From Geosiphon pyriformis uo1 (taxonomy: Eukaryota > Fungi > Glomeromycota), in assembly GCA_016748015.1 (NCBI GenBank), contig JAAOMT010000135.1:310001-374000 (forward strand): a stretch of DNA of 64,000 nucleotides, in the 5' to 3' direction. This document shows positions 9,179-25,900 of this stretch, piece by piece. The notes beneath the pieces are model-generated. The model saw nothing but the letters and a program-made list of their open reading frames with translations, searched no databases and had not been told where the DNA came from. The first letter of the stretch is position 1. Every line of letters starts with the position of its first letter. Made by a program: the position numbers and the translations under genes.

Positions 9179-12100
9179 ATGAAACAATCGGTGCGTTTCA
9201 CCACTCCTTACGATTGCGACGAAGAGGATGCTCTTGACGGGCATTCAAAGGCCTCGAGTTATAAGACTTCTCTGCATACTATCGGTAATCGTCATGACCT
9301 TGGAAAACCTCATTTTCCTCACAAAACCTTCACCCTTCATGGGTTTGGTGACGTGCAAAAGCAGGAGCTTATATCAATTATAAATCAAAATGGTGATTTG
9401 ATAACGGAAAATGTCACCGAAAATGTAAGCAAACTTTTTTTTGGTTTGTAAGCCCCTCTCTTTCTTTATGTTTTTTTTAAAATAGTTCGTTGAATTTATT
9501 CGAGATTTACTCAAATCTCTCTTATCAATCTTCAGACTGATTATTTTGTAACAAATCAATCTCAATTGGAGTCAAATTCACAGGAATATCAAGATTTGGT
9601 TGGCTACGATAACAAAAATGATGTGAAAATAGTTTCTGCTGATTTTGTATATAATTATAAAGCACACGAAGATTACAGGTAAAAAAAGACAGGATCTTGT
9701 CATTTATATTACACTGTCTACAGTCACAAATAAAATTTTACCCAAAAATGTAATTTTATTAGGTCTAACGTTTCGCGTAACAGTAGAAGTTATGATGTTA
9801 ATCGAATACCGTGGTCTCATGAAGGAAAACGGTTGATTAATAGTTCCGGACGCCATTTAAGTAAGAGTTGGTCCAGTTCAACAAAAACGCATAACTCTTA
9901 CCTTCTTCGCACTGGGGCAAGAAATTATGATGATGTAGAATATTTTGGGCGTCGAATTGAAAGTCTTTTCTCTAATTCGGATGATGTATCGGTTTCGGGA
10001 TCTGATGACTCAGAAGATAGAATAGTTCCTACTTTTACCGAGGGGGATTTTAATCAATATGCGGAAGTTGAAAATAATGAGGATGGTGAATTATTTGATA
10101 CCATTTTGTATGGCGTTGCACCATTAACGGGGGATGCTCAAAAAGAGAGAATAGAATGGCAGAGTATGTTGGCTTCTGTGCTCACTGGCGAAGTCATCAA
10201 ATCGGAAAAACGGAGGCTTTCAGGATCTAATTCAAGGCAACACGCGGCAAATCTAAGTTATCAGATATGGCTTGGTGTTCGGGCCGTAACTCGATGTCGT
10301 GTGCCGGCCGATGAAAAATTTATTGTAGAAGAAAAGAGACGACAAATCGATAAGGTTCTCCAAGACGTGATTCACTTTGTTGTGAAACCTGGTGACGTTC
10401 CGGCTTTGCAACAAATAGAACAAATTCTCAAATTGGTTGAGCGATGCGAGAGTCTTTACCCTTCGCGCAAAGCGATGATGGGGGAGAAGCCTCTATATAA
10501 AACAAAAGAATTTCAGTACAATCTGGATGCGCTTAACTCGTGGCTCACAATAACTCTTAGCTTGCAAACCCAATTAAAAATTTTGCAGAACTGGACTGGG
10601 AATATGTCTCTTGAAATCACTCGACCAAAGAATGCCCCAGCTAACGCTGAGAATTCATCTTTCATTGAGCGAATTCTCAAAGAAAATGGTTTAAAGCGTA
10701 CCTTTGAAAAGCGAACGCTTTCTACTTTGAATAAACTTTTAGCCAAGGCAAAAAGAGTCATGATTGAGAATGCCGATGCTTTTTCAAAGATGAATCTTCC
10801 TCCATATGATGATCAACTACGAAAACTGCTTAATTTTCCTACTAAACTAATGGAAGAATGTATGAAACTATTACTGGAATATCCAACAGTATCAGAACCG
10901 ACAATGCTAATGGTTGATCAACAAATGGAAGATTTCCGGGTTTCCTTGAAACTTGCCTGTCAAATTAAGCATCAATATCTTGTATTAATCAAACCAGCTC
11001 CAGGATGGGAAATTCCACCTTGTATTGACGAAAATTATAATACCGTGTTGTTGGATATACTCAAATCTTATTTCAAATTATTGCAATGGAAGCTAAAAGA
11101 TGGTGCCAAAACTATGTTCTTTAAAGAAGCCGAGATTCTAGAATCTGAGTGGTCTTTTCTTAGTGAAATATGTCTTAACATTCAAGGCGGTGACATTGAA
11201 ACAGCTGAACAATTATGGTAAGTCACAAAATTGGATTATATATAATAATAATAATAATAATAATATCAATATTAGCTATTTAAATTGGTACCCAATACTG
11301 CAGGAATAGTACTGGCTAATCAATTTTGATCAGATGTTAAAAATCAAATATTTAAAGTGGGCAAGGAATAATGCTCACTTAGTGTGTATATTTATTAGTT
11401 CTTTAACCAAAACACTGCTTCAGAGCGTCATGAAATACTTTGAATCTCAACTTCCTCTGCAACCTGATTTGGATGCAAATGGAATAATGAAATGGTACAA
11501 CAAATTATTAGAAACAGTACGCATAAGGGCTCGGAAATTGTTGCGATTTACAAAGTATGAATTGCTCTGAATCTGATTATTTACTCAAGAAATCTTTACT
11601 GAAAATTCTTGTACTTTTTTTGATGACTTTAAACTTCCAAAGATTCCTCTTTGGTAAGCTCGAGAATTCTGCTGAATATATAGTTGATGATGGCAATTAT
11701 CCAGCTTTCATCGAAGCCCTGGAACATTCCAATCACATACTAGTATACCCGGATACCTTTGAAGAAGACGGGGTCTGTATAATTGTCGAATCGTCCTTGC
11801 AAAATCAACCAGATATAATTCGTCGAACGCTTCAAGCTGTTTTCCCCTTATACGACACACCACAAGATAATAACGAGGAGGAATTGCAAGATTTAAAATA
11901 TATCATAATTTTATCGCCAAGAGTATCATTTGAATGGAATGGTCCTTACATGAATATTTCCATGGAGGGAGTCGGTGTTGAGTTAAAGGGGCATCGCACT
12001 AGATTAGTTGCAGATGCAGCTTATCTTCGTTTGAAAGAGTGTAAACAAAAATTCAGGACGGCAGTTGAAGGTTGTGGAATTCAAAGTGTATCGGAATCTC

Positions 12101-14198
12101 GGGCAAATGTGCACAGTGTCAACCAACAAATGCAAAAGATTAAGAAAACCGTTTATCATTTTGTCTCTAGCATCATTCACAGCGTAAATCATATTCGGGA
12201 AGTGACACAGAACATTGAGTGCCAAGATCTCATAGAAAACTGCTTCAGTTTTGCTACAGAGTTTGGTCAAAGATGTCTACGTTACATGCATCACAACAAA
12301 GCCCGTAAGGAGTTAAATTTGAAACTTACACGGTTGGCAATTGACTGGGTTAGTTTTATTTGTGATGATTGTGTTCCAACTGATCGAAAAACATTTCGAT
12401 GGGCGGTTATCGCTCTAGAATTTTCCATGGCCATCAACCGTGGTAACAACATTTTGGGTCTAACAGAGTCGGATTTCGCCATGCTTCGTAGCAAAGTTTC
12501 AGTATGTATGACCTTGCTCGTTTCTCATTTTGATGTTCTTGGTGCTCGGTCATCACATGAGACACAAGAACGTCAACTACAAGAAGCTATCGGAAAAAAC
12601 GCAGTGCTCAAACCTTCGTTGTTACGATACGAGAATGAATATCTAAAAATGCGTAAGGGATGGATGGAAAAGTTGAATAAACTTGAATTTGATCTTTCGA
12701 AAAAAGAAATTGATCAAGGACTTGTTGGCAAAGTTCTTGATAATACTCGACCTGAAAATCGGCCTCTTGTATTCCTTGCTTCTTCCAGTTCCAACATCTC
12801 CTTACGTTGGCAACAGGGGAATTTTCTTGGTGGTGGTACATTCGGATCTGTATACGTTGCAACGAATATAGATTCGGGTGACGTGATGGCAGTCAAAGAA
12901 ATTCGATTTCAAGACCCATCTTCTCTAACTAGTTTGGTCAAATCTGTAAAAGAAGAAATGTCCGTTATGGAGATGCTCAATCATCCTAACATAGTCTCTT
13001 ACTATGGAATTGAAGTTCATCGTGATAGAGTATACATTTTTATGGAATATTGTAAAGGTGGATCTTTGGGATCACTTCTTGAGCATGGACGTATAGAAGA
13101 TGAGAATATTATAAAGTATTATACCCAGCAAATGTTAAAAGGATTAATATATTTGCACGAAAATAATATTGTCCATAGGGACATAAAGCCTGACAGTGAG
13201 TATCGGTTTTCTAAATTTTCAATTTTAGGAGTATTTGCCTTATCGTTAACATCGTATCCGGTAAAACCATAGATATCTTACTTGATCATATGGGCAAGAT
13301 CAAATTTGTGGATTTTGGCGCTGCGAAAGTCCTTGCCAAAAACCAAAAGACTTTAGGAAGGACCACTTTACAAACAAATACAAATGTTCATAGTCTTACA
13401 GGGACCCCAATGTATATGGTTGGTTAAATTTTAGTAAACTGAATATGTGATCATTGAAGTTTTTTTTTTAGAGTTCTTGAAAGCATCATCATAAATTTTT
13501 CTATTAAATAACAGGCACCAGAAATCATAACCGGCCAAGAAAAGGGTCGGAAAGGTGCGATGGATATTTGGTCGTTGGGATGTTGTGTGCTTGAGATGGC
13601 AACTGGTAGGCGTCCATGGTCAAATCTCGACAATGAATGGGCGGTCATGTATCACGTTGTGACCGGGCACCCCCCGTTACCAGACCCATCACAATTATCA
13701 GATCAAGGGATGGACTTTTTAAAACAATGTTTTACACGATCATCAGAAGAACGTCCTTCTGCCGAAGAGTTGTTAACGCATCCATGGCTGAGTGAAGATT
13801 ATCTATTATCAGTTGATGACTGGTCTGGCGTAGCCAGTGATTTCCCCAGCAGCGACGGCACCGGGACCACAACTACAATAGACACAAGCCTGTATTATTC
13901 CAGTACAAACACACTACACTCAAATGGAAGTTTTTTATTAGCAGAAAGTTTTGTTGAGAAGGGTACAAACAACGACAATACTAAGAATATTTTAGCTCCT
14001 CGGAGACAGCCATCTATATCTTCCATTATATCGGTGGAAAGTGATAGTGGCATGGGAATTGCAATTAATGACTTTGAGGATGCTGCAATCAATGACGTTG
14101 AGGATGCTGCAAGTAACCATGTGCCCGAGGTTATAAACTCATGTAATATCAGAAGCGAGATGTCAGGAAACGACCAGTGGAGTTTGGTTGATAAATAA
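9179..14198 (+). CDS. SSK2: HOG-pathway MAP kinase kinase kinase, Ssk2/Ssk22/Wis4 family. Exons ~9179-9424, 9536-9678, 9763-11217, 11399-11554, 11643-13195, 13273-13418, 13515-14198
   Basis: Ssk2-type N-terminal motifs ERIEWQSMLASVLTGEVIKSEKRRL and DWVSFICDDCVPTDRKTFRWAV. Kinase motifs GGGTFGSVY, MAVKEI, HRDIKPDN, DFG, GTPMYMAPE across canonical introns. Confidence 0.93.
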
Positions 14199-14981
14199 AT
14201 GGAAGTTAGAATTGAGCCTTGATGAAAAGAAACCTGCTAAAATTCGGTCCGATTTTTTGCAAAGGTTAATTTAATCTAATGCTTAACGAGAATTATTTTG
14301 GGTGACAACAATACATAAGATATGGACTTTTATTGTTTATCATTTTACTTAATCAATTCTTTGATCCTAAATTTTATCATGTATTATTGTGTAATGTTCA
14401 AAATTTACATTGTGAAAAAGGTTCAAGATGTAGATTAGCAATTATCACTTTAAATTGAGTTATAATCGATTGAAACCAAACTTACAATCAATAATTTATT
14501 AGCTTTTGATAAATATTATATTGTATTGGGAAATTTTAACAATTTAGTTAATTTAATAAAACACAAAAATTAATTTTATATTTAAATTTACTTATAAAAT
14601 ATAAAGTAATAATTGTGTTTTAATAATTTTGAAATATAAATAATAAAAAATATTATTTAGATTATTTATTTACCCACTTAAAATTATTGTAAACTAAAAA
14701 TAATGTTATTTAAACTATTACTTTTTTATATTTACATTATCATTAATTTAAATACTATTTTTTTAAATCATTGATTATTTGAGTCATCCTATTGGTTGTC
14801 TCAAGACTTGAAAAAAGTACCAGTAAATCTGACTTCGCCTCCTTAGCTCTTTCAATAGTGTCGCGATTATTTAAACTCAAACTATGGGCCTAATAGTCCG
14901 TATTCCTTCGTTTTAGAACTTGCTTTCCTTCCCCCCAACATAGTCGTCTAGTAAAAGAAACTATTTGTAGCTTTTCTAGAA

Positions 14982-17181: not shown

Positions 17182-19160
17182 TCAGATTTGTAATGAGCTT
17201 TCAGAATTATCATCATCGACCCAATTCTTTTCGTCATCCTCGTCTAAAAGTGTAGGATCATCCACGTATTCACCTCCTCTGCATTTCGAACATGAACATG
17301 AGAATTTCCATTTCTTTGACAATTCTTCTTTCCTGTCATAGGTTTCCCTTTCACCGAGTACAATATAGCTGACTTTTATTTCTTCACCTGCCATAATTCG
17401 TTTTGTGGCAACAACTGATAAAATATGATCACCAGATGTAAATTCGATATCTACATTCGGATCACAAGAATGCGCAATATAAGAAGTAACATGATAGAAC
17501 CCAGCTCCTGTTATAGGAGAAGCGTTACTGCGCACTGTTTCCTTCGAATCCTATTGAAAAGGAAATTTCACAAGTATATTTTTTTGTTACAAAAATTAAT
17601 AAGAATATCTTAAATACCTCTATGATCTCTCTAGTGTATTCTCGGGCAGTATTTACACCGTACGCATTATACAAGAGTTTGCCTTTAAACATCATATATC
17701 GCTCCTCGGAGATAAATTCTTCAATTCCGGGAACTTTGCTCGCGAGCAATTCCTTCAGTATTTCTATTTCTCTGTGTTCTTTGGGAGTCGCAGCCAAATC
17801 CAAATATCGTAGCCTCTCAATGTGGTCAAATATGGAATAGTCTTCCTCAATACCCTTTGAGACTTTTTCGGTTTCCTCGTAAACCATACGAGCCATAAAT
17901 TTAGCGATCATCAAGGGAATTTTGAGGTTACCATCCTTTACTAAATTCACCAATCTTGTCTCGGGGTTATCACCCATTTTGAATCCTGGGGGTCTTTGGA
18001 ACAATAGATTAGAGTATTCTGCACGAGCCGTCTCTTGACACTTTTCTGTGCAGTACACAGACGAAAATAGATCTTGGTCCTCAAACCGAGCTTCCCTCAT
18101 CTCTTTCAAGCAGTAACTACAAAAATGGCCTCCCTCAAAAAGGTAAATAGGGATTTCAAAAACGAAGTAATGCGGGAGATCAATTTTTTACCCAATTATT
18201 AATATCTTAAGGATCTAAAAATGGATTGGACAACTTACCTCGAGAATGGGGTCGAGAGCTGAAACAATAGGTTTTTCTTCGTAAATAATTTCACCGGGGC
18301 TGAAATCTCTTTTCGCGAAAACTCCACGAGGAATCAATTTATCTTTTTCACTTGAATTATTTTCAACTTTCTGAATTTTTACGTTCATATCTTTTGTTGG
18401 GAATACTTTCCAATATTCCTCCTGCTTTTTCTTGACCTAGCATCAAATACAAATATTCATAAGGCATAGAAAACTAGTCGGTGTTGAATTGTTTTGTTTC
18501 AAATACCTCAAGGGACATCATTGTGTAAACCAGACTAAAGACCGCCTCTGGAATTGTCTTTTGGTATATCACGATAAGCTCAAGGGGTGATGGATAGACT
18601 TTCAAAGCCTTATAGAAGCAAATGGCAGCAGCTTGATATCCATTTTCCCCTATAAACGTCCCAGACATAATTATAAGTCATTTTTAATTTATACATATTA
18701 AGGTTATGTAAAAATTAATATATAAACGCCTACCAGCTGCGAAAAATGTTTCACCCTTGGCTACATGATCCAAAAAATATTTCTCCTTTTCATCAATCGC
18801 TTCAGGAAAAACTTCTTTACAGACCTCATCAAGGGCTTCTTGGGCAGAGGTTGTTAATTTATTTCGATTATCCTCTTCTTTGGCCTTCTTGATCTCGGCC
18901 GCCCGTTTCTTCTCTCGCTCTTTGGACAAAAAATGAACGCTATATAAATTAAAGGTACTAGAAGTAATATTTCGTCTGGGCTTCGCATTTTTCGATAAAA
19001 AACTAAAACCAAAATTCTATCAAGACAAGACATTGAACTCACTCAAGCGCCTTCGAAAAACAGGGTCATTTCTTCTTTTGTAGTCAAAGTAAGCTATGTA
19101 ACTCAAGGATATGACCCCAACCACACCTAACACAAGAAATAAAGCTCTTTTGGAATCCAT
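17182..19160 (-). CDS. TOM20: Mitochondrial import receptor Tom20 fused to a SMYD-type split SET / zinc / post-SET module. Exons 19160-19043, 18919-18734, 18649-18507, 18436-18239, 18133-17618, 17550-17182
   Basis: N-terminal TM followed by YFDYKRRNDPVFR and FYKALKVYPSPLELIVIYQKTIP (Mas20). In frame after that: RGVFAKRDFSPGEIIYEEKP, CSYC...YCTEKC, AHSCDPN, GEEIKVSY, FSCSCSKC. Confidence 0.88.
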
Positions 19161-20044
19161 ATAAGGCGTGGCTAGGAGGAAAGAGACAAAATAGGGCAAA
19201 GAGTTATTTGAATTATCTAGTATTAAATAATAAAATTAGAGCGTCCCAATTGATTAGAGTAAAAGGTTTACAAAGATAATCTGTAAAGATTATACAAGTG
19301 AAATTTTATGAATATTTTGTAAATAATATATATAGTTAAAACATATTTAAAATCACAATAATAAAATAATAAAAATACTTTTAATAAATTCACATTCAAA
19401 AACAGATAAAATTTTTTTTTTAAATTTATTAATAAAATTAGTATTTAAATAATAAATAAAGAAAGGTACACTAATGAAATAATTAAATATTTAGATAGTA
19501 AATAGACTGCACACAATAAATACATTTAAAATATTTTTTGTTTAATTATAATTATATTATAATTATTATATTAATTTATTATTTATTATGTTTATAATTA
19601 AATAATTTAAAAAAATCAAAAATTTTTGTAGTTTTAAAATTTTTTTAATAATTATAAATAAAAAATATACTATTATAGTTTTATATTAATTTTAATTTAA
19701 AGCCAACATATAATAAAATTGTTTAATAATTAAATATAAATACCAATTTCATAAAATTAATATCTGAACAAAACTTTATTGTTTATTGAAGAAACAATAT
19801 AACCAAATTAATTTTTACTTAGATGTGACACAAATAAAAAAAGTATTTTTAAAAAATAATATAAATAAAGAAATTAATTAACATAAATAATAGTATATTA
19901 TTGTACTTTAATTAAATGATTAAACTTAAATTAATATTGTTGTATGCGTATATATTTTTCATAACACAATAAAATTTTACCGTCAAACTAAGTAATTAAT
20001 TATTATAAATTTTAAACAGTTTTATTCATTATATTTCTTTTTTA

Positions 20045-20150
20045 ATTATTATTATTATTATTATTATTGTTGTTGTTGTTGTTGTTGTTATTATTATTTT
20101 TATTATTATTATTATTTTTATTATTGTTATTTTTATTATTTTTATTATTA
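20045..20150. repeat. (TTA)n/(TTG)n compound microsatellite
   Basis: Direct reading. Confidence 0.85.
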
Positions 20151-20337
20151 ATGTTTGTTTTACATTTAAAAAATAACAATTTATATTGGTTTAAAATTTA
20201 ATTGTAAATAATAAAAATTTTTAGATGACTATTTCTAAATAGTAAAAATAAATATCTGCATAACCAATCACGGATCCAAGCCTACAATTCCAATTAATTA
20301 TCTGCTATGCTATTTTTAAATGATAAAATTTTAAAAT

Positions 20338-21444: not shown

Positions 21445-22673
21445 TCAGCCGAAACTATCCGTTGAATCCATGAATCCACTAAAATTATTAAACGAATCAA
21501 ATTCTTTAGGGGTAGTTTCTGCTCGTTTCTTTCTGGAAGTTACGGAGGGTGGCGGTGGAAGTAATGGGACATCTGGGAGATTTAATGATATCATTAGCTA
21601 ATGTTCGGTTAGAAATAATTGGACAGATGAAAAACCAACCCGTCGAGCTCAGGGTTTCTTCGGGTCCTTTACTACCCTTAGGAGGTTGTTTCTAGAAACT
21701 CCATTTAAATTAGAATACTAAAAATTTGCAATAAATTAAAAAGTTAAATCGACCACAATCTTACATTTCCAATGGTGATACTAATCGTCTGACCCTCCTT
21801 TAAACTGTAATCCTTTGGATTTGAAGCTGTTATCTTTGAGCGTTCAGCCGCTTCCTTTTCCACATTTAAATGCCTTAAGCATAGATATTCAATTTAACAT
21901 AATTATGGTGTCAAAGAATAAATAGAATTTGCCATATAAGCTTGAGAAAACATACTTTATATGATCTTGCAAAGTGACTTGAAAGTCAAATGCTTCGGAA
22001 CGTTCTTGAAATCCCATCCCAATGAACGCATGTCGACCTTTAATAAATATTCCCAAGATATAACATCTCGTAAAAATGTTACAACTTTCCAGGTAATAAA
22101 ATCGCAAAATTGAGTTCAAACCTTTATCTTCGACGCGCAACACGAAGTAACGGCTCGAATCACGAACAGGTTCGACTGAATTAGTTTTGGGATCGTATGG
22201 AGATTCGGCAAACAATTCACCTAAAGGTGATTGCAAGGTTAATTATATAGTACTCGATATTTAAAATTGATCAAGAAGGGTTTTCAACATTTCTCTTACC
22301 AGTAGTACCGTCCTCGAGTCGAATAAAACACTTTTCACCAATGGCGATGATTCTTAGACGGCCTTTCCAGAGAAAAGCTTCCATGTCACCCCATTCTGCT
22401 GCTCTGTTCTTTTAATTTTCACAAGAGGCGCTATTGTTAAGTTCTTGATAACACGCGAATTCTATATGCAAGAGAAGCCATCTATTTTAATACGTGCCTA
22501 TACTCCTTACTAGAACTTCTTGGCGGGAGCTTGTAGACTAGGAAAAAAATGGTGAAAAATATGTTCTATCAAGCTGACCATTAAGAGAGAGAAAGTGCTG
22601 GTGTCATTTAAGAGGGTTCTTTACCAAAACATTCACGAATAACGAGCAAAACGCTCTGATACTCATCGGCCAT
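21445..22673 (-). CDS. NECAP: Adaptin ear-binding coat-associated protein (NECAP, PHear domain), ~8 exons
   Basis: Spliced: [19 protein letters not shown]...RAAEWGD...WKGRLRI...GELFAESPY...[15 protein letters not shown]...[24 protein letters not shown]...[16 protein letters not shown]...LLPPPPS. Confidence 0.92.
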
Positions 22674-23309
22674 TATTTAGATTAGAAAATTTAATCTGAA
22701 ATTGAACATATATGCTATTTAAACGTTATTACTTCGCAGATTGACATTAAAAATATAAGACAATGTAATTGTTGCTTAAATTGTTATGTAATTTACAGCT
22801 TATGCTTTTTGCTAGATAAACTACATTCTGAACTGGATAGAACATTACAGCAAAAACATAATGACGGTGATAAAAACCTTGGTAAATAAAAGGTTTTTCA
22901 AATAAACATTTTGAAATTTATTGAAAAAGAATATTGGCAATTAAAAAAATGACTGCTATGAAAATGTTGTTGAAAAATGTTTTTATTTATTATAAATAAG
23001 AAACTTGACAATTATAAAAAGTTTGGATTAAACTTGTATTTCATATATTTTATAAAAAAATATTGCAATTTATTAAATATCAAAAAATAAAGTCTGTTAC
23101 ATATTTATTAAATAAAAATTTTAGTAATATTTATCAAAAAAATATGGTTATAATTGTATCAATAAATAAGCAAAGTTTATATATTTTAATTTTATTATAT
23201 TTGTTGTTATATTAAAATGTAATTTCTTTTATAATACTATAATAGTTTTAAAAAAATATAAAATTATATGTTAAAATTTAAACTTTAAAAAAAAACTTTT
23301 TTTTTTGCA

Positions 23310-23600
23310 ATTTTATGATCACGATTAAAGCAAAAATAAAAAAAAGTAATCTTTAGTTTTTTTATTGTTTGTAATAGTACAATTACTTAAAAAGTTCTCT
23401 TAATTATAAAAACAATCAAACAGCATTTTGTAAAAATATTTTTTTTAAGTGATATAGAATTTAACCAGTTTTTGGCTGTTAAAAAAACATTTATTTGTCT
23501 TTGGTTAAAAGTACTTTTTTTAAAAAAATAATACATTATTAGTAAAGATTTTTTAAATATTATAATTGCTGATTTTATTGTTAATTTTGTTTTTAATAAA
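23310..23600 (+). mobile_element. 5' fragment of a related ORF1-type relic, in tandem with the element at 23640
   Basis: TTTTATGATCACGATTAAAGCAAAAA matches TTTTATGACCACAATCAAAGCAAAAA at ~23651. Confidence 0.55.
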
Positions 23601-23639
23601 AGCTGTTAAATTTTTAATAATATATTTATCTAATTTTTT

Positions 23640-25900
23640 CTCTTTCTTATTTTTATGACCACAATCAAAGCAAAAAGTAAAAAAGTTTCAAATGTTATTT
23701 TTCTTATAATAACTAATAAAATTTCAACAAAAAAAGATTTTTCTATTGTTAAAACAACCAAACAAAATATTCTGGCAAAATATTTTTTAAATATTAGTAA
23801 TAATAAACTGTCTTTAGCAGCTTCTAAAGCATTTTTTTCACCTTTAATTAGTAGTTTTTTCTTAGTCAAAGTTTTTTCTAAAAGACACATTCAAATTAAT
23901 TTCAGTGTTATTTTTATTTCCTTTAAAAATCCCAAAGTTTTTAACAACAAACCAATTAACAAGCTGATCTTTTTTGTTTTTACTACTAATATTAACATTA
24001 CTATTTTACAAATAGCCAAAAAGGCCAAAAATAGCAGCAGTTGCTTTTATTATACCAAATCTTTTTGTAGTTTTAAATAAAATCTTAAATAAAATTTTTT
24101 TAATAACAATTAATTTTTTTCTTAATATAAACAACAACAATAACAAAACATTTTCCAAAATAAGCCAAAATTAATTATTGATTGTATTACCAAATATAAT
24201 ATTTTCTAACAGATTATTGCTAATTCTAAAAGCAAAGCAATTAATTAAATTACTTAATTTTAAGAATTAAATTAATCAAATAAAAATCAAATTAATCTTT
24301 TTTTTTGTTTTCTGGTATTGTCTCAAATAATATCTAACAACCAATTTTTAATTATCAAAAGTTTTCTAAATAAATGATTTTTATTTTAGTGTTTAATATT
24401 ACTTTTAAGATTAAATTAATCTTGAATAATTTTTTGTTTCATTTGTTGTTTGGTTTTGTTGAACTTAAATTAGTTTTTAAAGACAATATTAAGTTGTTTT
24501 GTGTAAATTTTATTTCTGAAACTTTTTTAACTGTTATTATTATTAAAGTTTTTATTGATAATTTTTTTTAATTATATTTAAGATTATAAAATTTTCTGTA
24601 GTAATTTTTGGTTCTCTTTTTTTATATCTGTTGTATTTTGTAATATTTTTTTTAACATATTTTTCAATAATATTAAAAATAGTTTTAATGTTTTTGGTGT
24701 TATTAATTCTGTTAGATTAAAGTTTATTGGTTTATGACAATATATTATTGTTGTTTTTAAGAACTTTTTTTTGTTGTTGTTATTTTTAACTGTTGATTTG
24801 TACCAGTAAAAAAAAATAATATCCAGATTTTTTTTTTTTCAACAAAAAAAGATTATTATTTTAAAAGATATATTTAAAACCAAATTGATTAATTTTTTTT
24901 TTAGCTATACTGTTTTTAAAATTAGTAATATAATTTTTCAGATTAATAATTATACTTGTTTTATCTTTTGTTTTCTTGATTTTTATTGTCATTGATATTT
25001 TGTTGTTGTAATATTTGGCTTTTATTAATTTTTGAATTTTACTATTATTAAAATTAATATTTTATATAAGTATTGTATTTAATAAAAAAAACTTTTAAAT
25101 ATTATTGTTGTTATAAATATCAAAATTTAAGTCATTTGTTTGTTAATTATAAAATGGTTTTTTTTGTTTTTTAAGTCTGTAGTTGGTTAAGTTTTTTGTG
25201 TTATTTTTTATTAATAACAAGTTTTATATTATAGCTTTGTTTTTTTGGTTTCTTTTTTTATTATTTTTTTAACTGTTTTTGTTATTGATTTTGTTATTAA
25301 GTTTAAATTAGATTTTTTGGAATTTCAAGTTTTGAATTTAATTGTTTTGGTTAAATCTGTTATTAAGTTTATTAACTTTTTAGTTGTTTTAATTACTATT
25401 CTTTTAAATAATAATGTTGACAAAAGTTTTTGTATAAAAAAAAACTTGTTTTTTATAAAATATATTGCTAATAATTTTTCTAATTTTCTGATTAATATTT
25501 CTAAAAATATTGTCTGTTTTAAATTTGAAATTGATTTTAGTAAAATAGACTATAATAAGATACTAGTTGTTAAATTTTTTTTTGAATAAAAATACTATTA
25601 AATATATTATTGTTTTATAGTATATGTTAAGTTTCAATATTAGAAGTAGTATTAAATTAACTAAGTTATTTTTTAATAAGTTTATTTTTAATTTTAGAAA
25701 TTTAAATAGTATTATTAAAAAAATTAATAATTTAAATCTATTTTTAACTTTTTTTGTTTTAATATAGTATTGTTTTAATTGGTTTAAATAACTAATTATA
25801 TGTAAAAAGTACATAATTTACATCTAGTTTAAATTATTTAATTTGATATATTATATTAAATTGTATTTTTCTTTATTATAAATTTATAAAATATTAAAAT
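23640..25900 (+). mobile_element. Decayed ORF1-only non-LTR element with LINE 3' tail
   Basis: ORF fragments 23655-24080, 24374-24571 (FKIKL...KLFCVNF, RRM-like) and 25245-25589. The frame ends at TAG 25765-25767, immediately followed by the same tail as the LINE at 39948. Confidence 0.7.

Follow-up and report, generated by a model that had tools for sequence, protein, structure and literature searches.

A Tom20 import receptor continuous with a SMYD-like SET domain in Geosiphon pyriformis and other fungi

The mitochondrial import receptor Tom20 is encoded in Geosiphon pyriformis uo1 by a single gene together with a SET domain of the SMYD type. The gene lies on the minus strand at 19160–17182 of a 64,000-nucleotide stretch of the genome (NCBI GenBank assembly GCA_016748015.1, contig JAAOMT010000135.1, positions 310,001 to 374,000 of the forward strand), which we refer to as the window and whose numbering is used throughout. 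The fusion, first proposed in an initial annotation made from the sequence alone, is confirmed here, and the best explanation overall, to which we assign a rough probability of 0.6, is that the protein is the only Tom20 of Geosiphon and carries a SMYD5-like, split-SET lysine methyltransferase module. This architecture, which combines a match to the Pfam Tom20 family MAS20 with a SET domain, has been annotated before (in this gene as well as in others) and has appeared briefly in print, hence it is already known, and it is functionally uncharacterised.

The case for the fusion is made up of six independent lines of evidence: a conserved linker, base composition, a cDNA-like contig, an open exon in Allomyces, intron position and structure prediction. 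The comparisons draw on 123 homologues, which are the sequences with equivalents of exons 1, 3, 4, 5 and 6 in order. In these, the 16 residues with which exon 4 opens, ahead of an internal Met (18388), are conserved as protein; linker residue F185 is found in 116 and P186 in 122 of the 123 sequences. The same stretch in the window contains no ATG and is preceded by two stops, located one and three codons before the splice acceptor, hence its translation requires splicing to exon 3. The Tom20 and SET matches are also close together, nine residues or fewer apart in 111 of the 123 homologues. GC content is 34–42% across the joint versus 10–16% in the promoter-type intergenic DNA of this genome, and the composition profile contained no AT-rich, promoter-type trough between the two halves within 17182–19160.

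Furthermore, a Logan contig from a related glomeromycete (L004, 1630 nt, with a terminal A-run) carries an uninterrupted MAS20+SET open reading frame of 482 codons. It aligns to the genomic gene of Funneliformis mosseae in six blocks, which identifies it as cDNA with the same five introns removed. Splicing is unnecessary at the joint in Allomyces macrogynus, where MAS20 positions 96–131 and the strands of the N-terminal part of the SET domain (N-SET) share one uninterrupted genomic exon (117 codons). The joint intron is found at the same codon in Geosiphon, F. mosseae, Mortierella alpina and Phycomyces (Glomero-, Mortierello- and Mucoromycota) and is absent in Allomyces. Finally, the AlphaFold2 model, made with a 121-sequence alignment (predicted local distance difference test score, pLDDT, 89; predicted template modelling score, pTM, 0.80), has one helix at residues 160–184 that crosses the joint at 173/174.

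An independent ATG for the SET part, raised by the initial annotation as a possible objection, found little support. The internal Met is present in only 83 of the 123 sequences and was rejected as a conserved alternative start, and the conserved linker ahead of it has no start codon. Candidate stand-alone SET orthologues were rejected as well: the database models concerned take the internal Met as their start or begin within the linker or the last Tom20 helix, hence they are truncated or split annotations and not free SET genes.

Split annotations of the MAS20-SET family are common in public databases. At the Dentipellis locus, D. fragilis has two annotated neighbouring genes (g83, MAS20; g84, SET), versus one protein of 659 residues in Dentipellis sp. 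KUC8613. A model from Mortierella claussenii (P0169, 632 residues) merges PF01667 with MAS20+SET and is probably an over-merged annotation, and the Tom20-SET gene of Mortierella alpina has a gene for ribosomal protein S27e (L006, 650–1293) directly upstream. A UniRef entry labelled Anthurium amnicola (P0197, 485 residues, ‘TOM20’), ascribed to the transcriptome of a plant, also has MAS20+SET and is closest to glomeromycetes (79% identity over exon 3). Contamination by a root fungus is its probable source, which would make it a second fused sequence derived from transcripts.

The gene structure and topology described here are, in our judgement, very likely to be correct. Six exons run from an ATG at 19160 to a TGA at 17184–17182 (Table 1), giving a coding sequence of 1530 nt (509 codons and the stop). 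All five introns are GT-AG, 67–123 nt long and AT-rich (GC 18–31%, exons 36–43%), and the phase-0 intron originally proposed at 18506–18437 proved to have these borders and a length of 70 nt, with 447 nt of coding sequence ahead of it. The motifs on which the original proposal leaned (YFDYKRRNDP, AHSCDPN, GEEIKVSY and CSCSKC, the latter of the form CxCxxC) can all be read directly in the translations.

Table 1. Features of the Tom20-SET gene and its upstream region, in window coordinates.
Feature	Position	Strand	Description
Exon 1	19043..19160	-	ATG, N-terminal membrane anchor, basic juxtamembrane YFDYKRRNDP; MAS20 positions 2–29, 35.9 bits
Intron 1	18920..19042	-	123 nt, GTGAGT...AG, phase 1 (model of this analysis)
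Exon 2	18734..18919	-	Charged linker, then the first part of the cytosolic Tom20 core; MAS20 positions 32–90, 30.6 bits
Intron 2	18650..18733	-	84 nt, GT-AG, phase 1
Exon 3	18507..18649	-	Conserved Tom20 core helices; MAS20 positions 94–131 of 132, 47.2 bits
Intron 3 (Tom20/SET joint)	18437..18506	-	70 nt, GT-AG, phase 0
Exon 4	18239..18436	-	Conserved linker helix (VKKKQ..Y...FP), then N-SET strands; internal ATG at 18388; SET positions 2–26
Intron 4	18134..18238	-	105 nt, GT-AG, phase 0
Exon 5	17618..18133	-	Half MYND finger and long helical SET-I insert
Intron 5	17551..17617	-	67 nt, GT-AG, phase 0
Exon 6	17182..17550	-	C-SET (GAGFY, AHSCDPN, GEEIKVSY), post-SET CxCxxC, acidic disordered tail, stop; SET positions 60–104, 38.5 bits
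Upstream intergenic promoter-type region	19300..20200		10–16% GC (composition profile)

A protein of 533 residues deposited in GenBank for this gene (G9A89_013610, P0203) is 100% identical to all six exon translations and shares the exon 3/exon 4 junction with our model. Full-length analyses were run on this protein and residue numbers (e.g., H438, Y473) refer to it, and the exons of the window gene were searched one by one. Exon 1 corresponds to its residues 1–39 (100% identity). The sole difference between the two models is intron 1, for which P0203 splices out only 19026–18976 (51 nt), thereby gaining 24 residues at about 40–64. These residues are absent from the homologues, break the family consensus FRRKLKKERK and lie in a region of low pLDDT (60–67 at residues 41–60), which together favour the longer intron 1 (19042–18920). 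In homologues a single bridging residue connects the equivalents of exons 1 and 2, and the alignment consensus fits the 19042/18920 junction. The deposited model is therefore probably mis-spliced at intron 1.

The initial annotation described the Tom20 half as complete, and profile searches bear this out. Exons 1–3 each score above the gathering cut-off of Pfam MAS20 (PF02064, 27 bits) and together cover profile positions 2–131 of 132, the end of the profile being reached six residues before the end of exon 3. A hydrophobic run at approximately residues 5–25 is followed by YFDYKRRNDP..RRR, and AlphaFold2 places a helix at 3–31, the predicted membrane anchor. The core (model residues 54–175) superposes on Tom20 of the Chaetomium thermophilum TOM holo complex (9i7s, chain K) with a Z score of 17.0 and a root-mean-square deviation of 3.0 Å over 121 residues at 32% identity (VIA-align). 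The likeness to such Tom20 proteins extends to the signal-anchor helix, the basic juxtamembrane stretch and the helical TPR-like core. Ascomycete and animal Tom20 proteins, however, have a short tail after the core, whereas in Geosiphon the last helix runs into a SET module of ~36 kDa.

A profile search of the 128-Mb Geosiphon assembly detected a single MAS20 locus, and a search with exon 5 detected a single copy of the SET insert, hence the fusion protein would supply Tom20 function in this fungus. With no second Tom20 in the assembly, the Tom20 part would be expected to do the normal job of a presequence receptor in the TOM complex. That both domains are products of one gene and should lie on the cytosolic side of a membrane anchored N-terminally, as first suggested, agrees with the gene model and, for the orientation, with the established topology of Tom20.

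The SET domain is split, as the initial annotation had it, with the N-terminal end of the Pfam SET profile in exon 4 (below the cut-off by itself) and the C-terminal end in exon 6 (38.5 bits). Its assignment to the SMYD type holds for the N-lobe. The predicted structure of residues 183–514 matches SMYD2, SMYD1 and SMYD3 with Z scores of ~21 over 260–270 residues, in each case the N-lobe only (chain residues ~3–297), the SMYD2 match aligning 264 residues (Z 21.6, model 189–514 versus chain 6–296), and Foldseek matched the SET half to SMYD with an E value of ~3e-13. By sequence, the nearest solved relative is SMYD3 (E 6e-11, phmmer), to whose residues 191–285 exon 6 aligns, and insect SMYD5 gave an end-to-end BLASTP alignment (E 1e-17). 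The assignment does not extend to the C-terminal TPR-like domain of SMYD1-4, to which nothing in the protein corresponds, the structural matches ending at SMYD residue ~297. The protein instead ends ~30 residues after the post-SET in a disordered acidic tail, with pLDDT <50 from residue 512.

The Cys-rich insert noted initially is also only partly of the expected kind. Its four Cys (C244, C247, C267 and C271) make up one of the two MYND zinc sites, whereas the columns of the second site (258, 261, 280 and 284) hold D, L, S and F. A complete eight-ligand (C4-C2HC) MYND finger was not found in the window protein, which had no match to Pfam zf-MYND (PF01753), and exon 5 by itself had no Pfam match. 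In the catalytic region, H438, S439, C440, P442, N443, Y430, N395, Y473 and C496/C498/C501 are all present. H438, C440, Y473 and C496/C498/C501 align to SMYD3 H206, C208, Y239 and C261/C263/C266, and GxGxY and the aromatic pair before the post-SET are kept relative to SMYD3, in which N205 corresponds to the Geosiphon Ala.

Taken as a whole, the likeness to SMYD enzymes comprises a split SET with an insert at the MYND position, SET-I helices, GxGxY, HSCxPN, the catalytic Tyr and the post-SET CxCxxC with its aromatic pair. SMYD5 in particular is similar in having no TPR-like C-terminal domain and in its acidic tail. The Geosiphon protein differs from SMYD proteins in being tethered to the membrane through Tom20, in the Ala in place of the Asn of NHSC, in retaining four of the eight MYND zinc ligands and in its longer SET-I insert. 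Human SMYD5 trimethylates RPL40 at K22 (PMC11369092), which we take as a lead only; a SMYD5 preprint contained nothing on fungi or mitochondria.

Searching 1.84 billion representative sequences with exon 5 returned 207 relatives at E ≤ 1e-3, and in 43 of the best 150 cluster representatives a Tom20 part lay directly in front. The initial annotation had pointed to similar two-domain annotations in other fungi, which was correct and indeed understated the distribution, as Chytridio-, Blastocladio-, Zoopago-, Mucoro-, Mortierello-, Glomero- and Basidiomycota all have the architecture. Named members come from Glomeromycota, Mortierellomycota (often with two paralogues, both fused), Mucoromycota, Endogonales, Zoopagomycota, Kickxellales, Basidiobolus, Blastocladiomycota, Chytridiomycota and Agaricomycetes. 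None of the named MAS20-SET members found by homologue search was from Ascomycota. The ESM Atlas holds two clusters of the family (101 and 107 members), with MAS20 in 100% and SET in 91–100%. These data point to a fusion that was already present in the ancestor of fungi and disappeared in Ascomycota.

Our results are in agreement with a 2022 survey of fungal SET proteins, in which one sentence describes a ‘Group 25’ with MAS20 upstream of SET that is missing from Ascomycota, and which gives no function (PMC9692433). The Geosiphon gene is a member of this group and differs from it in nothing essential.

If the protein is arranged as predicted, its N-terminal anchor would sit in the mitochondrial outer membrane, with the presequence-receptor core next in the cytosol and the last helix of this core continuing unbroken into N-SET, the half-MYND, the large SET-I, C-SET, the post-SET and the acidic tail. 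The SET part would then stand in a fixed position next to the receptor, on the cytosolic side of the TOM complex. With the N-terminus in the membrane and the rest in the cytosol, the SMYD module would thus be kept by the presequence-binding site above the TOM pore. The role that we consider most likely in Glomeromycota, at slightly under even odds, is that the module may still act as an S-adenosylmethionine (SAM)-dependent lysine methyltransferase on proteins at the mitochondrial surface, such as precursors before import, bound chaperones or ribosomal proteins; the initial annotation had proposed Lys-rich presequences, chaperones or TOM subunits as possible substrates. The conserved SET-I/peptide groove may in addition serve as a non-catalytic surface for binding clients.

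A precedent for chemistry of this kind, again a lead only, is Ctm1p, a cytosolic SET enzyme of yeast which methylates apocytochrome c before import and thereby enhances import (PMC9006661). Functionally it resembles what a TOM-tethered SET domain could do, but it is soluble and has no fusion to a receptor. Ctm1p belongs to another SET subfamily. In its widest form, our explanation would hold that in every fungal phylum outside the Ascomycota the sole Tom20 is rigidly fused to a SMYD5-like enzyme, so that lysine methylation of precursors, or of docked ribosomal or chaperone clients, is built into the entry gate; we regard this extension as speculative and rather unlikely. Such an arrangement would have been overlooked because the model systems (yeast, Neurospora and Chaetomium) all come from the lineage that lost the fusion, in which some of this work may have passed to soluble enzymes, for example Ctm1p.

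Several observations weigh against catalysis and against parts of the explanation that we prefer. In the window protein itself the N-SET glycine motif reads PRGV in place of GxG, the second MYND zinc site is gone and Ala stands in place of the NHSC Asn, a residue that contributes to SAM binding. The caution attached to this AHSC from the outset was justified and applies to the whole family, as the position is S, G, T, M or A in most of the 123 homologues. Beyond Geosiphon, the catalytic Tyr is replaced by Phe in 37 of the 123 (~30%), in Mortierella paralogue 1, Blastocladiomycota and Kickxellales. The Mucorales copies (P0205–P0229) have QSE for HSC and no post-SET CxCxxC, although they keep a full eight-ligand MYND finger, and judging by these motifs they are probable pseudo-methyltransferases still fused to Tom20. 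Since catalytic motifs have eroded in whole lineages in which the fusion was kept, catalysis cannot be the only conserved role. Furthermore, the pTM is the sole evidence for a rigid packing of the domains in the predicted model, the junction in Geosiphon itself rests on comparative evidence, and in the full texts searched for Tom20/MAS20 with SET/SMYD the only relevant sentence was that of the 2022 survey (PMC9692433), with no function and no substrate reported.

The main alternative is that the gene is fused as described and that its SET module is a pseudoenzyme, a rigid non-catalytic extension which docks clients or partners (precursors, chaperones, ribosomes) through the SET-I groove and the MYND remnant. 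The most conserved columns of the SET part (D342, H343, R346, G375, F379, Y385, G390, Y394, N395, R418, G426 and Y430) lie in SET-I and along the N-SET/C-SET and groove edges, and the catalytic elements (the Asn of NHSC, HSC, the post-SET and the Tyr) decay lineage by lineage while the fusion persists in all of the lineages so affected. However, HSC, PN and the catalytic Tyr are retained in the alignable Glomeromycota sequences, including that of the window, as are the aromatic pair and all three Cys of the post-SET, the exception being an N for H438 in Acaulospora colombiana. Such retention is unexpected without selection for SAM chemistry and counts against a pseudoenzyme. Nor need the change of Tyr to Phe abolish activity; in SET7/9 mutants it weakens the enzyme without necessarily inactivating it. 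We consider a pseudoenzyme in Geosiphon unlikely, although it is a serious competitor, and a catalytic role plausible from the motifs, if not as the sole function keeping the fusion together.

Across the family the losses form a mosaic. The four ligands of the second site have been lost together in Glomeromycota, Blastocladiomycota and Basidiomycota and are kept in 84 of the 123 homologues, in other lineages, with the eight-ligand finger encountered in homologues from Mortierellomycota, Mucorales and Zoopagomycota.

A further possibility is that the gene makes two products, the spliced transcript giving the fusion and a transcript retaining intron 3 giving a stand-alone Tom20 of ~159 residues ending in ...SLEVFETKQFNTD, so that splicing would tune the ratio of plain to SET-bearing receptor. 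Intron 3 is situated exactly at the domain boundary, in a position shared by four species from three phyla, the MAS20 profile is complete six residues before its donor, and its retention would end translation 10 codons into the intron (TAG 18476–18474). A stop within 70 nt of AT-rich intron is, however, expected by chance, the helix is predicted to continue across the joint, and Allomyces has no intron there, hence intron retention is impossible in that fungus. This makes two products improbable, and they would in any case be compatible with a Tom20 fused to a SMYD5-like methyltransferase and not opposed to it.

That two adjacent and independent genes, a Tom20 ending at TAG 18476–18474 and a SET gene that has its start at ATG 18388, were merged by gene predictors is very unlikely and already contradicted: the in-frame stop that follows exon 3 if it is unspliced, the fairly conserved Met at the start of N-SET (83/123) and the SET-only or Tom20-only database models (e.g., g83 and g84 of Dentipellis fragilis) are in its favour, but only ~86 nt without an AT-rich promoter region separate stop and ATG, the linker ahead of the Met is conserved as protein without a start codon, the Met is T, K or S in one third of the sequences, the ‘SET-only’ models are truncated, L004 is fused and the open exon of Allomyces spans the joint.

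Troughs of 10–16% GC similar to the one upstream of the Tom20-SET gene flank genes at 14350–14800 and 22900–23900 of the window, the genes themselves having 35–42% GC. Such AT-rich troughs are a sharp marker of gene boundaries in the Geosiphon genome and are useful for judging other gene models. Neither of the neighbours stands out: 11557–14198 (plus strand) was judged by eye to be a large protein-kinase gene with catalytic-domain motifs in two long open reading frames, and 21889–22236 (minus strand), also by eye, an exon resembling NECAP/DUF1681-type adaptin-ear-binding proteins.

What is known of mitochondrial import comes almost wholly from Ascomycota and animals, in which Tom20 is small and stands alone. 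Our data indicate that the ancestral, and still predominant, fungal Tom20 is a protein of ~57 kDa with a SMYD-type domain on the helix of its receptor core. If the SET part is active, an enzyme would be placed to modify proteins at the moment of their import, and if it is inactive, it would represent a new kind of receptor extension. Either way, it is a conserved and unexplained feature of a central machine, which an import field based on Ascomycota has not addressed.

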